Notes under the pieces: model-generated
The model's input: only the letters and a program-made list of their open reading frames with translations
Database searches by the model: none
What the model was told of the DNA's origin: nothing
DNA from: Schizochytrium sp. TIO01
Taxonomy: Eukaryota > Protista > Bigyra: Labyrinthulomycetes
Reading direction: 5' to 3'
DNA: 64,000 nt
NCBI GenBank assembly: GCA_004764695.1
Contig: SMSO01000037.1
Coordinates: 4,874,747-4,938,746, forward strand
In this document: positions 14,146 through 21,550 of the stretch, piece by piece
Position numbering within the stretch: the stretch's first letter is position 1
Layout of the letters: each line of letters starts with the position of its first letter
Position numbers and translations under genes: made by a program

Positions 14146-17100
14146 ACTGTACACGAAGAATTATGTGTGGATGCAAAAGCTTGGCATGGCCAGTTTCGAA
14201 GCCGTTAAGAACAATTACTTGAGGAAAGTCCTATTTCATATGCGGAGTCTGCGTAATCTTCTTTGGATATGCCAATTTCTCGGTTAACGGGATTTTGTTT
14301 GTCGTTGTCTTTCAGCGACAGATAGCTTAGATGCCTGCTTTGGGTTTCTTGCATCTCTGCCGTATGTTTTTGATCCAACTGAGGCATATACTTTTCCGGG
14401 AAATTGTGCGAGAGATCCCTTGACAAAGAATCACGATCATGCTAATGCTCTGTATGTGTGATGTTTATGTGTTTGTGACGATATAAATGACCAAATCCTA
14501 AAAAGATAAATCTATATTTTTCTGAAAAAGATACATGATTCTCATCATCATGACTTGTTGAAACATTTCGTTATAAGTTTTATTCACGGAGCGTTTTGAA
14601 AGTAGCTGTCTTTGAAAAGTCACTTTCTCGTCAGTTCAGCATAAAGTTTGATGGGTGCCACACCAGTAGACTGAGTTCCAGCATGAATCCTGTTTGTTGC
14701 TTTTACTTTAAATGAATTCTTAGGATCTCAGAGAAGGAAGTGATATTTATATTTGAGGAGTCACTGTTGTCATCTTAGCTCCCTTTACATGTGAAGTATT
14801 TGTATTAGGTTACAGGTCTTTTGATGTGTGAAACCAGTTTTGTAAGAGACAACTCAAAGAAGTATTCTTTCCAGATAGGGTAGGGCCTAGAGATGAGCTG
14901 AAGGGTGGAAACTTTAGTCTCTTTGATGAATGAAACAGAACTATGAGTGAGACGGAAGGATTTAATCTAATGCTCTTGAACCAAAAATAAATAATAATAC
15001 TACAAAAACTTCGTTTTTAAAGCGCTGCAGTTAAAGTTGAAAAGAACCGGGGCACTATTAAGTGTTAGTAGCAACTTAAATGCCAGTGGGTGTAATATAC
15101 TTGTTTGGTGAGAAAGATTGGATTTTGCCTGCGATTTTTCGTTTACTTTACTAATGGCAGTACCTAGGTAAGCGCTATACGAAATGAAAAATTGGGCCCG
15201 CCAGTCTTGTCTTTACTACCCTTTCGCATTAAGATTGGTCCGAGCTACGTGAACAAGCCAAGTTCTTCGAAGATAATATTATGGATGTTTAGGTCTAATG
15301 GCGTATACATAGCATTGATAGAAGTCGAAAGACCTTCCTGTTGACGTTAACATCTGATCAATCGAGCGTGGGAGGAAAACTTGGAGTCTAAAGATCGAAG
15401 AAACACAACGAAAGATCATCTTCGCGTAAGCACGGCAAGCAGCAGTCAAATTGCTACCTTTGTTGATGGGGTGCCGCAGTAATCATGTTGCAAGCGATAC
15501 TAGATGAGTCAGTACGAGAGTTCTCAATTAAGTACGCTTTTCGTTCTCATTCTTCCACACTACCTACTTCCAAACTTGCAATCTATCCCGCATAAAAAAA
15601 GAAGTGCTTTAGCTAGGAGGTACCTACCAGGTTAAAGGAGCAGGCCTCGGCTCCCTTTTCCCGTTTTCATTAACTACATCTGCTGTTGTGTTTTTTGTTT
15701 TTTGTTCAACTTTCCTGCTTGGTAGTATTGCAAGTTGTCAATAAAAGATCTACGGTAGTGCGACTAAACTAACCCAAAGCTTGGCCAGACCCGACCTTGT
15801 AAAGTCACTTTGTGGCCGTTCGGGGCGCTCAAAGTCTTTCCACAAAACAACGCCAGCAGGAGGGCCAGTAGCAGCAAAGACTGCCAGGGCCCAAGCAAGG
15901 CAGCGGCTAGCGGCTAGTGAGTCAGTCCCTAGTGCGGCGGACCAAGTGCCGGCACGTGAATGGGCAAGTGGAAGTTGGGATCCCGACAGGAACAAAGTAG
16001 TTCACACGAGAGAGTGTTGATTGAGAGTGCTCACGCGTCGCTCGGGTCGACTCTGGCGGCAAAAGGTTTGTTTAGGGTAGTATATGATCGAGCTAGCTCT
16101 TACGTACTTACTTACTTAGTTACTAGGTTCAACATACGTGAGTGCTTCCTTGGTTACGCGGGTAGATCATACCACCGAGGCGAGTAGTCTAGGAGTGGGA
16201 AGAAGGTTTGCCAACTAGTAAAACCAGGAGGAGCGTGTGGAATGGCTATATAACGACATAACAAACGCTGGTGATACTGGCTGGTGCTTTCAAAGTTAAC
16301 CTTTGTTGAAAGATATTTGGTCTTTCAATGAATAAATGATACCCGGGCTGCTTGTTGTTGTAGTACTTACCTCTTCTGCACGATTCAATCGCACCACTTC
16401 GAAAAGAGTTAATTGCTTCGCTCCATGAACAAGGAAACGAACATGGGGGGTTTGGATGACACGGAGTACTAGCTACTTCCTTAGTCTTTGCTTAAAAAGA
16501 GTTGCACTTCGCAAAAGGAATTACGGTGCAAGAAATTGAGCACCAGCCAAATAATAAGTGCAGCTTACGAAAGTTTTGCCATTTCGGGGATGATGTTAAA
16601 GGATTGGTGGCGCTCGCAGGCCTTGGTCGGTTGACTTAAAGGCTTTCAGGTTTGTAGGTCTGTTTCTATATTGAACGAGTCGTTGCTAAAATTTCGTATG
16701 TGCTGCTGAAGAACAGAGTGACCGAAGAAAAGAGAAGGAGGAGTGAAGGCGAGAATGAGGCAGAAGAAGGGAGGGACCACTTGAAGGACAGCTTGAGGTG
16801 ACGATAGTAGTCTTGTTATGGATGTAGTAGGTAGATGATGGATATATAAATAGTAAGCAGTATAAAAGTCGAAACGAAGAAAGAAAATCCATGAATGATA
16901 CAGGTTACAAAGAAGAGTAAAATAAAGGGGCGAAATTGAATGGGACACTTGATGTGTCCCTATTTTGCCCGCATGCGGTGTGAGGAAATGATTGTAGTAC
17001 ATGTGTAAGCAATGGGAGCGAAGTAAATAAGACGGGTTAACTGCAGTCGTTGACAGCGTGCAGCGAGTACGAATCGCTGGCGCTGAGCGGGCTGCTGGTG

Positions 17101-17160
17101 GTGCTGCTGAAAGCGGTTTTATATATAGATAGGAAATAGCCAGGGGTTGAGGCATGCCAA

Positions 17161-18357
17161 TTAAGGCGAGTCTTGACCCTTCTGGTTCTTGGTCCAGCGC
17201 TCGACGATGAGCTTGCGGAGGTTGCTGCGAGAGATGGCGTAAGTGCCAACATAGAGTGTGATTTCGCTGTGCTTGCCGTCACCACGGCGCACAACAGCAG
17301 AGTATCCAGCCTCAGTGAGGAGCCAGCACACTCGTACAACAAGAGCAGACCAGATGCATCCGGGGTCATCTTGCGCAAGGCTCTCGGCGTAGTTAGCGAC
17401 GACGAGTTTGCATGCATGAGCGACGAGTTCGCGGCTGGGAATGCCACGGTGCGGGCCCTGAGTGAGCTCGTGGGCACACTTGGAGCGGAGCAAGAGTTGG
17501 ACGTCTTCCTGGAAAAGAACTGCTTTGCGGTGCTTACGCTGGTTTCTAAACCCTGAGGCCTTGAGGCGCGTAGCCTCTTCAGGGTTGAGTTGTCTGACCT
17601 GGTAAGACTCCATCATGTCAAGTACAATATCGGCCTCTGTCCTAGAGATGCCTCCGCTGGTTTCGATTTCGTGCATATGACTGAGCGGAAGCGGGGCGCA
17701 ATCATGGTTTGAGCTGGAGACCTGTTCGAGTCCTGCCTCTTCGTCGCTGTCGACTTGGTTGTTGTTGTTCATGTGCGTCGAGGAGGATGAGGAGGAGGAT
17801 GAGATGGCGGTAGCAGAGATCGATTCGGTGGAAGCGCTGCGCTTAACGGGGAGCACGGGCATCGGGAACGGGCGCATCTGCTCCTCACGAGGTGCGTGGG
17901 CTCTTGCACTGCTGTTGTTGCTGCTGCTGCTGCTTCCGTCGTCGATGGCGAGGTCATCATCCACCATTATAGGGGCACCCATGTTGGCATTGTTGTTGCT
18001 GCTGTGGTCGTTGTGGATACTGTCGATGTCGTCATCAAGGGCTGCAGGGGTGAACCAAAAGGGTGTGGTGGCTCTGGAGTTGTTGTTGGTGGACGAGAAG
18101 CCGTGGAATGGGGCATCAAAGTCGAACTCGTCCTCATTTTCGTGCATGCTATCTCCAAAGAATCCTTGCATGGAAGAACCCCAGAAGCTACCCGGCGCAC
18201 TGGGGACGACCACGTCGGACGCCATGAGAACGAACTCGTCCTCCGGGTCTGTCTTGGCCTTTTTCGCAGGCCTTGGGTCGTACAGGTCCGCCGCCGGCGC
18301 TGCTGCTGCCTTAAAACGGTGGCTGCTGTCCGCACTAATGTTGCTAAGGGCCGTCGT
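17161..18357 (-). CDS. Orphan putative nuclear regulator (long acidic/Ser/Asn-rich disordered region plus ~165-aa globular C-terminal domain). Proposed ACG start at 18357; first ATG is at 18225
   Basis: Open frame with GC-rich, coding-like codon use. NLS-like PRPAKKAK lies upstream of the first ATG. Poly-S/N and acidic-aromatic tracts. C-terminal region has ordinary globular composition. The start position is inferred. Confidence 0.8.
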   Translation of the reverse strand, partial: TTALSNISADSSHRFKAAAAPAADLYDPRPAKKAKTDPEDEFVLMASDVVVPSAPGSFWGSSMQGFFGDSMHENEDEFDFDAPFHGFSSTNNNSRATTPFWFTPAALDDDIDSIHNDHSSNNNANMGAPIMVDDDLAIDDGSSSSSNNSSARAHAPREEQMRPFPMPVLPVKRSASTESISATAISSSSSSSSTHMNNNNQVDSDEEAGLEQVSSSNHDCAPLPLSHMHEIETSGGISRTEADIVLDMMESYQVRQLNPEEATRLKASGFRNQRKHRKAVLFQEDVQLLLRSKCAHELTQGPHRGIPSRELVAHACKLVVANYAESLAQDDPGCIWSALVVRVCWLLTEAGYSAVVRRGDGKHSEITLYVGTYAISRSNLRKLIVERWTKNQKGQDSP

Positions 18358-18509
18358 TTTGCCAAATTTGTTCCACCCACTCGCGTGGGCGGTCTTCAGA
18401 TCCCTAGTGCTTTTCCGAGAGACTTTTCTTCTAATCGCTAAACACGAGCAACCAAGCTCGCTGCGATGCACGAGGATGTCTTCCTCGCCGCTGAGCAGTG
18501 AGCTGCTTG

Positions 18510-18549
<40 letters not shown>

Positions 18550-19089
18550 CTTGTTTGCTGTCTTGCTGCTGCTTCTTGATCTACCCTGAGCTCTCAGGAA
18601 CTCTTCGGCCTGAGTTTCAGATTTGCTGTCTGCTTGCCTCACTTGTGCCAGTTGGGGCTTTGTTTGGTAGCAGCTAGCTACTTATCACACCGGGACTAAG
18701 ACTCCTAGCGAGCTTCAGGAAGGAGCGCGACGGGTTTGTCTGCTGCTTCTTCTGCTTCTGCTTTTGATCTATATCTCTTTCGCTTTTTTCAGAGTTAAGA
18801 GTTTGTTTGCTCTTCGCTCTCTCTCCTTGGCTTGGCTTTCTTTCTTTTCTCTTCCTTCCTTGTTTTCCAACTAACTAACTATTTAATTAATTAGTTGATA
18901 ATTAAATTAAATTAATAGTTAGCAGAAGAACCTCCAAGAACAAAGAGGCACTTATCTACTAAGAACTAAGTCGCTTCTTGCTCTGCTTTTGCTCTGCTTT
19001 TGCTCTGCTTTTGCTTTGCTTGTGGGTTTGCTGTGAGTTGGCGAGGTGCTCGGAGTTGCGGTTTTGCTGGCGACTTTGCGTGGGCGGCA
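18358..19089 (-). promoter_or_regulatory. Putative long AUG-free 5' leader
   Basis: No CAT on the + strand between 18226 and 19089, so no ATG on the minus strand for ~865 nt. Confidence 0.55.
18373..18392 (-). promoter_or_regulatory. GNRA-tetraloop RNA hairpin in the putative 5' leader
   Basis: Minus strand reads CCGCCCAC-GCGA-GTGGGTGG: an 8-bp stem (one G-U pair) with a GCGA loop, ending 15 nt before the ACG. Confidence 0.55.
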
Positions 19090-21324
19090 CATCCAACCGC
19101 AGCTGTCTGCCGCGACTATGCCTGCGATAGGTACTAAGCGTGACGAAGCATGGCATTCCTTATGTGCTTGCTAGCCTTGCCATCATTCAATGCAAAAGAG
19201 AGAAAGAAAGAAAGAAAGAAAGAATAGATGAAAAGAAAGGAAAGAGGCCCTCCCTGTCTCTCCTCTCCCTTGGAGTGTGAGGAAAAAGGCTTTTCACTTC
19301 CCCTCTCATCTTGGAAAGTGAACAAAAGTAAAAGCTCTTCCCTCCTTTTCTTTTGTCTCTGCATGGGTCGGTCGCTTTCTTTCTCACTTTGAAAAGAACC
19401 GGCTCATCAGACAAACTTTCTTATTCCTTTCTAGTAATATTACTACAGTACACCTTCATTGAAAAAAGATTAAAAAGAAAGAAAGAGAAGAATGATCGAT
19501 CGATTGATAGAAGAAGAAGAAGAAGAAGATTATTGAATAAAGGATAAAAGAAAGCATCGCTTAAATAAAAAAGAAAGATGAAAACCTACTCTGTTGCAGC
19601 TTCTCTGAGGAGGCGCAAGGAACAAACAAACAGATGAATGAATGAATGAATGAATGAATGAAGAAATAAATAAATATTTGAATACGTGACAAATGAAAGG
19701 GTGGAAGAAAGACACGGGTCCCCTCGAGACTGCTTGCTGCCTCTTCCTGATCCGAGTGAGACTTTCAATTCTTAATTCGTTATCCATCTCCGGTCGCTCA
19801 AGTCTTCATTAATTAAAACAGACTGGCCGCCCGAGTTCCCAGAAAGCACATGCACCGATATGTTAAAACTAATCTAAAATAATAGTACACATACAGAAAG
19901 AGAGAGGGCTGCCCTGTCAGGGAGCCAGTCAGCCCAGCCTGTTTCCCTTTTGTGAGTTTGAGATCACTAACTCTCTCGTAATTGTTTTGTTTGATTTCTG
20001 TTTTCCTCTTTCATTTGAAGGAAAACAAGAAACTGACAATGAAGTTAGTTAGTTTTAAACTTAAAAGAGGGGAAGCTAGAAAGCAGAGGGGCTTCTGAGT
20101 CGGAGAGAGTTTCTCCGACGATTTCCTTTTACCATTAAAAAAAAAGAAGAAGAAAAAAGTTAAATGATGCAAACTATAAAATGAAATTAAAAAACCAAAA
20201 CATAAACGTTTTTTTCTTATTTTCTTATTTTTTTTTCTTCTCAAATAGTGATTTAAACGAAAAGCCTTCGTTTTCGTTTTCCCAATCTAGCGACTCAGTG
20301 CCAAACAAACTGGTACAGATTCAAATAGGTCTCTCTCTACCGACTGTTTAATTCATTTGTTTCTTCCTTTGTTAGAAAAACTTGACACTCTTGCATCATA
20401 AAGGCGAATCAAGATGCACCGAGAGCTTCTCCTTTACACAGCATGGCATAGCGCCAGTTCGCCCTCACGTTTGCTTTCCTCGCCTCTGCCGCGTTCGTTT
20501 TTTGTGGTGCCAGAGACCCCTGGAGGCCTGCCTCTCTCGAGGCCAAGGGCGCATCAGAGAGAAGAAACTCGAGGCCTAACGATCCTCTCTCTCTCTCTCT
20601 CTCTCTTCTCGCTGTTCCGCCGGTCCAGAAAGGAAAAGGCAAAAGAAAGAAAGAAAGAGAGAAAGAAAGAGAGAAAGAGAGAAAGAAAGAAAGAAGGAAA
20701 GAAAGGAAAAGAATGCCGAAAGAACTGGCGAAAGAGAGAACGGTCCATCGATCGCTCTGCTGGTTTTGAAAGTAGATGATATCACATCTGCTGTGCCACC
20801 GAACAGTCCATCCATCGTTGTTTGTATTAGACACATTCTCTTCTCGAGACTGCCGATGTCTGAGGACCTCGAGGAAAACAAGCAAATGCGGGGATTAGGA
20901 ATCGAGCAAAGTCGATCGAAAAGCGATTTTGATCAACTGAGACAAAATGGCCAGCGACCCGTCTCGTAGGGGTCCCCTAAGGTTTACTGTAGTGTATCCT
21001 CTTTGCGCCATGCTCACAGAGAGAGACGTCTCGCCTTGGGAAACGAACGTCGTAATTGCTTTTGCACTCTTTCGCCTCCATCTCCTACCGTGCAGCTAGC
21101 GGTAACTATAACCCCCATCAATTACGCTCCTTTGCTCTTTGTGTACCACGAGACTCCCCAGATGTTTGAAAGTTTTTTCTTTTTCTTTCTTTGTTTCTTC
21201 TCTACGCTTATGTATCAGTATGGAAAAGCAATTCATTGAAAACAAAGAAAGAAACTTTTCAAAATAACAGCCTAACAAACTGTTCTCCAAAAGTTGATGA
21301 TGGATGTACTAGTGAGAAAAGCAC

Positions 21325-21464
<140 letters not shown>

Positions 21465-21550
21465 GATGTGGCTGAGCTCCCAAGTCTCGCGATTCGTCCT
21501 CCCTCTTCTCAGGTGGGTAAACGGACTGTCCCATAGATAATGTTGTAAAA

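Follow-up and report, generated by a model that had tools for sequence, protein, structure and literature searches.

Where does translation of a protein begin when its reading frame stays open, and looks coding, well upstream of the first AUG codon? The question is raised by a gene on the minus strand of a 64,000-nucleotide stretch of DNA from the labyrinthulomycete Schizochytrium sp. TIO01 (GenBank assembly GCA_004764695.1, contig SMSO01000037.1, positions 4,874,747 to 4,938,746), hereafter the window, in whose coordinates all positions are given; all features described lie on the minus strand. The AUG-initiated coding sequence of this gene consists of 354 codons and a stop (17161..18225, stop codon at 17163-17161), and is preceded in frame by 44 codons that open with two consecutive ACG triplets. 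A reading of the window made from its letters alone, here called the sequence-only reading, had proposed that initiation at an ACG yields a nuclear long isoform and that leaky scanning supplies a shorter one. Its observation is confirmed by the present analysis and its interpretation is partly supported: the tandem ACG is a credible candidate start and the extension looks coding, and the roles proposed for an adjoining hairpin and for a nuclear localisation signal (NLS) are unsupported.

The tandem ACG and the codons that follow it

The candidate N-terminal extension, 44 codons in length (18226..18357), is distinguished by coding-like codon usage. Scored with a codon log-odds model derived from 30 long open reading frames of the genome, this gene excluded, it reaches +0.26 bits per codon in frame 0 as against -0.12 and -0.44 in frames 1 and 2, a value like that of the gene's own coding-sequence segments, which run from +0.27 to +0.31 in the same frame. 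The impression that the extension looks coding is thus borne out, and codon usage furnishes the strongest of the new arguments for a longer form. Upstream of the ACG, from 18358 to 18684, the score is about 0 bits per codon with a negative patch at 18474-18430, so that the onset of the coding signal at the ACG also holds, approximately. Among the 44-codon windows without a stop that lie ahead of other genes, only 1.5% match the score of the extension, and in a leave-one-out comparison with the frame-0 segments preceding the first ATGs of 49 other genes, none reached it at lengths of 14, 20, 30, or 44 codons. At the first, second, and third codon positions the extension has GC contents of.61/.52/.70, which resemble the.57/.46/.68 found for the coding sequence of the gene and not the.52/.55/.58 of the leader upstream of the ACG. 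The peptide AAAAPAADLYDPRPAK is an example from within the extension; a peptide spanning the stretch ...TDPEDEFVLMASDVV... would imply translation upstream of the AUG.

The candidate start itself (18352..18357) consists of in-frame ACGs at 18357 and 18354, directly after GGCAAA; that the site is a tandem had been missed by the sequence-only reading, which named the first ACG alone. Its comparison of GGCAAA-ACG at 18357 with the GGCAAA-ATG of a thioredoxin gene is confirmed, as the latter (61168-61160) does start a Pfam thioredoxin. Frame 0 contains no stop between the ACG pair and AUG 18225, and is open from 18684 to that AUG, an interval in which frames 1 and 2 have 8 and 5 stops. In a start-context matrix compiled from 49 genes, position -3 is occupied by A in 55%, G in 29%, C in 8%, and T in 8%. 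Compared with these gene starts, ACG 18357 ranks at the 55th percentile; ACG 18354, which has G at +4, ranks at the 76th. The context that had been called strong is therefore only average. The first AUG (18223..18225, CTC-ATG-G), which is the start of the TransDecoder-called protein P0033 (353 residues) in an MMETSP transcriptome, stands at the 27th percentile with a pyrimidine at -3 and G at +4, and the following AUG at 18171 (TCC-ATG-C) lies at the bottom. The weak CTC-ATG and TCC-ATG contexts that had been pointed out are thus present, and all eight other scored genes of the window do carry a purine at -3, but AUG 18225 is no outlier. Its below-average context is as expected of an internal methionine codon.

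Transcript structure, the ATG-free leader, and a hairpin

Public sequencing data constrain both the transcript and the identity of the ACG. Among 24 public runs that hold the stretch, four (X1, X2, X12, and X19) were examined as assembled contigs. X19 extends over almost all of the 4.8-kb stretch, the flanks of the gene included, and amounts to 64.5 million letters, about the size of the genome; it therefore behaves as DNA. X1, X2, and X12, with 16-35 million letters each, cover only the interval from 16877/16909 to 19052/19148 and are transcript-like, their "RNA" label being a guess. The ACG at 18355-18357 is identical in all four runs and appears as part of a Thr-Thr pair in two independent JGI gene calls, P0001 and P0034. 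As it is unchanged in every run and protein call, it is neither an assembly error nor a strain variant, and the sequencing error that the sequence-only reading had allowed for finds no place here. C-to-U editing of ACG to AUG was likewise considered and rejected: the RNA-like contigs keep ACG, with no editing at majority level, minor editing being below contig resolution.

The same contigs delimit an mRNA that extends from 19148 to 16877 (16877..19148). They are colinear with the genome, as exemplified by record 1 of X1 (2222 nucleotides), which runs from 19148 to 16909 without a joint, and the contigs of X1, X2, and X12 all read through the acceptor-like TTTAG at 18440 with no splice joint. 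The colinear, joint-free contigs show an unspliced mRNA of about 2.3 kb, and with it an intronless host gene for the candidate extension. The contig 5′ ends lie at 19052-19148, so that the leader, taken from contig ends rather than mapped transcription start sites, measures at least about 790 nucleotides up to the ACG (18358..19148, T-poor and rich in low-complexity sequence) and about 920 up to the AUG. At the other end, the contigs stop at 16877-16909 and leave a 3′ untranslated region (UTR) of about 255-285 nucleotides (16877..17160).

The leader is devoid of ATG over a remarkable distance. The tract 18226..19091 forms part of an 867-nucleotide gap between ATG 19092 and ATG 18225, longer than any other on either strand of the window (runners-up 831 and 795 nucleotides), which bears out the claim that the minus strand lacks ATG from 19089 to 18226. 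The accompanying expectation of about 13 ATGs, calculated at 1/64, ignored composition and was too high for a leader with only 15.6% T: base composition predicts 12 and a first-order Markov model 4.2, under which the probability of finding none is about 0.015. A 278-kb sample of the same genome that includes the window (L007-L026; 48-49 genes) served as the wider background. In this sample, ATG-free tracts of at least 470 nucleotides precede 9 of 48 genes, a number far above the Poisson expectation, and the tract described here ranks third after tracts of 978 and 959 nucleotides; mean ATG depletion is restricted to the first 100 nucleotides upstream of starts (5.5 vs about 15 per kb). The ATG desert is real and non-random, yet it is a member of a recurrent class, and the frequency of such tracts suggests that long AUG-free leaders characterise a whole class of genes in this genome. 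The desert of this gene coincides with the 5′ UTR defined by the transcript contigs. A second gene of the sample (L019:7769-8839, minus strand) combines a 726-nucleotide ATG-free tract with a 112-codon open frame upstream of its first ATG; with a codon score outside the top controls, that frame is probably not coding.

The one AUG that a ribosome could meet before the ACG pair is at 19092, 56 nucleotides from the longest contig 5′ end (19148). Its context is poor (TGG-ATG-T, 6th percentile), and it would open a possible upstream ORF (uORF; ORF, open reading frame) of 46 codons (18952..19092) that is contained only in mRNAs starting upstream of 19092. Within this uORF lies an 11-nucleotide tandem repeat of 4.4 copies (18973-19021), with one unit fewer in X12 and X19; owing to this polymorphism, the uORF peptide is unlikely to be under selection. 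Two further ATGs, at 19151 and 19156, sit just upstream of the longest contig end. Beyond them, a gene-free region of about 6 kb is densely set with tetranucleotide microsatellites, among them (AAAG)n, (ATGA)n, and a long (TTTC)n, at 19195-19245, 19634-19662, and 21300-21500. As far as it was examined (to 21200), this region has zero coverage in the transcript-like runs.

Close to the ACG pair is a hairpin, CCGCCCAC-GCGA-GTGGGTGG (18373..18392), with 8 base pairs including one G-U, a GCGA loop, and a predicted stability of -14.8 kcal/mol. Hairpins of such grade are fairly rare, at 0.11 per kb of the window, and the surrounding 121 nucleotides fold no more stably than shuffled sequences (z = -0.8). 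The hairpin does end 15 nucleotides upstream of the ACG, its last base at -16, as the sequence-only reading had stated; the part in initiation implied there is contradicted by its position. Hairpins known to stimulate initiation start 14-18 nucleotides downstream of the start codon (Kozak 1990; PTEN-beta, PMC5666671), and since this one is upstream, on the wrong side of the ACG for an enhancer, it is given no role in initiation. An AGG at 18405 would have the ideal +14 spacing to the hairpin, with A at -3 and G at +4. It was rejected as a hairpin-assisted start, since AGG is reported not to support initiation in yeast (PMC2909995).

Competing accounts of the open frame

The reading that we favour, at a probability of roughly 0.4, is that a fraction of ribosomes starts at the ACG pair and the rest at AUG 18225, with two proteoforms as the outcome. 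The 43S pre-initiation complex would scan a leader of about 0.8-0.9 kb and, the leader being free of AUG, would reach ACG 18357/18354 without encountering one, except possibly the poorly placed AUG 19092. Some ribosomes would initiate at the pair with initiator methionyl-tRNA, as at yeast ALA1, and produce a form of 398 or 397 residues with an additional disordered segment that bears a basic KKAK motif. The remaining ribosomes would leak past to AUG 18225 and produce the form of 354 residues.

A number of points weigh against this reading. The codon signal of the extension is mostly one of amino-acid composition: none of the 49 controls reaches that component, and 10 of the 49 reach the component due to synonymous choice alone. 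The likelihood boundary of coding is nearly tied between about 18402 and about 18351, and frame 0 remains open for 108 further codons beyond the ACG (18358-18684) without a coding signal, from which it follows that open frames at this locus can come from T-poor composition. That longer open frame could itself have arisen by chance from such composition (p about 0.007), be left over from coding sequence of greater age, or be a consequence of initiation further upstream. As for the ACG itself, the context score of ACG 18357 is equalled or exceeded at 10.8% of leader positions, and 25 near-cognate codons lie in frame within the open stretch. The 60 nucleotides downstream of the ACG fold no better than shuffled sequences (z = +0.38) and thus offer no stimulatory structure. 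Ordinary scanning to AUG 18225 would equally need an AUG-free leader, which is common in this genome. In X2 and X12, moreover, depth in the contigs upstream of 18565, ahead of the (GCAG)n microsatellite, is 3-7 times below that of the coding-sequence contig, so that for many mRNAs transcription may begin further downstream. The 32 relatives recovered by an exhaustive HMMER search match the C-terminal domain only and have no alignable N-terminus. Finally, the choice of this finding was made post hoc, out of many windows.

A serious rival, which we regard as possible and hold with some doubt, is that only AUG 18225 is meaningfully used and that the 44 coding-like codons either survive as a relic from a start codon lost recently or arose by chance from composition. 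As a relic, the site would have descended from GGCAAA-ATG-ACG by a T-to-C change that turned ATG into ACG, and ribosomes would now scan to the next in-frame AUG. ACG is one transition from ATG, the ancestral context would have been that of a normal gene start (55th percentile), and the weak context of AUG 18225 suits a former internal methionine codon. A recent loss of this kind would produce an identical picture: a coding-like signature, a weak context at the internal methionine codon now in use, and a leader free of AUG. In both versions of this rival, the AUG-free leader would be the outcome of the usual selection against AUGs ahead of the start in a long 5′ UTR. The 9 of 48 genes that have long ATG-free tracts upstream and the compositional nature of the codon signal speak for the rival. 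The TransDecoder call P0033 starts at the AUG, and the 132 nucleotides of the extension contain no strain difference where about 1 is expected; with so low an expectation, zero gives no selection signal either way. Set against the relic account is the fixation of the ACG in strains that differ at about 8 synonymous sites, which places any loss of ATG before the divergence of the strains, together with the lack of any visible stop, frameshift, or decay. The account by chance has to contend with the 49 control upstream segments, none of which attains the codon score of the extension. To both it may be objected that initiation at some low percentage would be expected anyway of any near-cognate codon that has A at -3 and lies in a leader free of AUG (PMC5666671; PMC2909995).

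An N-terminal extension could also arise from another near-cognate codon, such as CUG 18399, AUU 18339, or one further upstream in the 152-codon frame (GUG 18471, CUG 18597, or GUG 18642), in which case the (GCAG)n repeat could be translated as poly-QAGR. The persistence of frame 0 over 152 codons, while frames 1 and 2 have 5 stops each upstream of the ACG, lends itself to this idea, as do the near-equal minima of the cumulative codon score at 18405 and 18354 and the usual standing of CUG as the most efficient of the near-cognate codons (PMC11706245). The X1 contig is 24 nucleotides shorter, most likely within the microsatellite, a difference by which the frame would be kept. These indications are offset by the codon score of about 0 over 18358-18684 with its negative patch, and by contexts that are poor (CUG 18399 at the 6th percentile, GUG 18471 at the 2nd). 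For CUG 18399 the hairpin begins only 7 nucleotides after the codon, inside the mRNA channel; for starts beyond the repeat, a tetranucleotide microsatellite is unlikely to be tolerated inside a coding sequence, and the sequence of P0034 differs upstream of it. By context and codon score these starts are less favoured than the ACG pair, and we consider their use improbable. The microsatellite in question, (GCAG)12 (18503..18550), encodes QAGR repeats in frame 0 and appears to vary in length between strains: de Bruijn contigs break off there in X2, X12, and X19, and X1 crosses it with probably 6 fewer units. The JGI protein P0034 has a shorter repeat preceded by an unrelated sequence (VGASE), which is either a genuine variant or the product of a chimeric contig. 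Repeat-associated non-AUG translation of the (CAGG)/(GCAG) repeat was discarded, twelve units being far too few and the codon score neutral.

The last alternative is an upstream ATG-bearing exon spliced onto the open frame, for instance at the TTTAG at 18440-18438, a refutation that the sequence-only reading had itself put forward. A frame that is open before the first AUG and accompanied by an acceptor-like motif would fit it, and so would the unrelated sequence that P0034 carries upstream of the microsatellite. Three transcript-like runs nevertheless pass 18440 free of any joint, one of their contigs being colinear to 19148, and coverage upstream of 19148 in these runs is zero, with the proviso that contigs can miss rare isoforms. 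With no joint in X1, X2, or X12, such an exon is essentially excluded, and we attach very little weight to it.

The protein product and known non-AUG systems

What would the longer form add, and to what protein? The gene is lineage-specific. No part of the whole protein matches Pfam, and its differences between strains within the coding sequence, 8 synonymous changes and one V->I, attest to strong purifying selection on the AUG-initiated coding sequence. The other assemblies are of the same species and about 99% identical; a homologous-protein search returned the same gene only, and two metagenome scans gave no match. The only conserved domain of the protein is a lineage-restricted C-terminal one of about 160 residues (17173..17655), which is also encoded at four other loci of the same 64-Mb genome (5 loci in all) and was found by the HMMER search in 31 other representative clusters of public data. 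Its near-invariant signature reads ...CIWSAL...HISRSNFTK..., and its invariant residues include R342, E365, R377-S378-N379, and K382 in the numbering of the 398-residue form. AlphaFold2 predicts the domain with a confidence score (pLDDT, predicted local distance difference test) above 90 and the first ~230 residues as disordered. Foldseek returned no match in the PDB for the domain (E at least 0.5), and VIA-align no solved structure resembling it (best Z 4.4); given the lack of a structural relative in both, the view of this protein as DNA-binding or as a "regulator" is unsupported. An SFWG/SFWD motif at 18180-18195, 13 residues from AUG 18225, recurs in the distant homologues P0004 and P0013 at about 100-140 residues from their N-termini, a placement that may be taken as a weak hint of a longer ancestral N-terminal region.

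The basic motif KKAK, within PAKKAKTD (18253..18264), is the only match to K[KR]x[KR] in the protein, so that the extension does contain the sole clear monopartite NLS-type motif, as had been stated. The structural model leaves its surroundings unstructured (pLDDT about 45-53). A motif of this type occurs in the N-terminal region of 4 of 22 homologues, where 0.73 are expected. That the extension directs nuclear import, and that the long isoform is hence nuclear, is speculative. The 354-residue form is small enough to diffuse into the nucleus. With a C-terminal domain of no known function, a role as "nuclear regulator" is conjecture.

The implications depend on which account holds. Were the favoured reading true, the lineage would gain its first documented case of a dual-isoform gene with a non-AUG start, and possibly a way into a wider class, as about one fifth of the sampled genes have long AUG-free leaders; no publication linking Aurantiochytrium with non-AUG initiation was found. 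Confirmation would extend tandem ACG initiation from fungi, plants, and animals to an industrially used stramenopile protist, would mean that AUG-only gene models truncate some proteins of this organism, and would offer a way to study where the proteins of a lineage-restricted family without a known fold are localised. Should confirmation fail, what remains is an ordinary gene whose leader is long and whose start codon was lost recently. The ATG-free tracts of 470 nucleotides or more upstream of about one fifth of the sampled genes bear on translational control.

Like an ordinary long 5′ UTR depleted of upstream AUGs, the ATG-free tract coincides with the 5′ UTR and has its equals among the 9 of 48 genes; unlike such a leader, its last 44 codons are coding-like and have a frame-specific GC distribution, which depletion of AUGs does not explain. 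The GCC-rich NAT1 motif at -9..-4, which is specific to mammals (PMC13754004), was also considered and is absent at the ACG, where TTTGGC stands instead. FGF2, with its CUG-initiated N-extended forms (PMC5666671), and PTEN-beta, which starts at AUU, share with the candidate an upstream near-cognate codon that would add a basic, localisation-changing N-terminus, with two proteoforms generated through leaky scanning. They differ in the codons used, CUG or AUU, and often have a conserved hairpin 14-18 nucleotides downstream, whereas the hairpin here is upstream.

The closest parallel is yeast ALA1, in which synthesis of the mitochondrial alanyl-tRNA synthetase starts at two successive ACGs in frame, redundant ACGs being stronger than one, and in which the best -3..-1 context for ACG is AAR (PMC2909995). 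As in ALA1, an in-frame ACG-ACG lies upstream of the first AUG (by 23 codons in ALA1 and by 43-44 here), positions -3..-1 are A-rich (AAA-ACG-ACG-G), a candidate targeting signal comes with the extension, and ribosomes that leak past to the first AUG would give the short form. ALA1 has been proven experimentally and its extension is a mitochondrial presequence, whereas the start proposed here is a candidate and its extension carries the basic KKAK as a putative signal; the leader of about 0.8-0.9 kb is also far beyond typical yeast leaders. The most specific form of the analogy, in which an ALA1-like tandem ACG at the end of the AUG-free leader yields a long and a short proteoform of a protein with an orphan domain, the basic nuclear-import motif being confined to the long one, is on balance unlikely. 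If true, the candidate would be a further case of an already known type of non-AUG extension.

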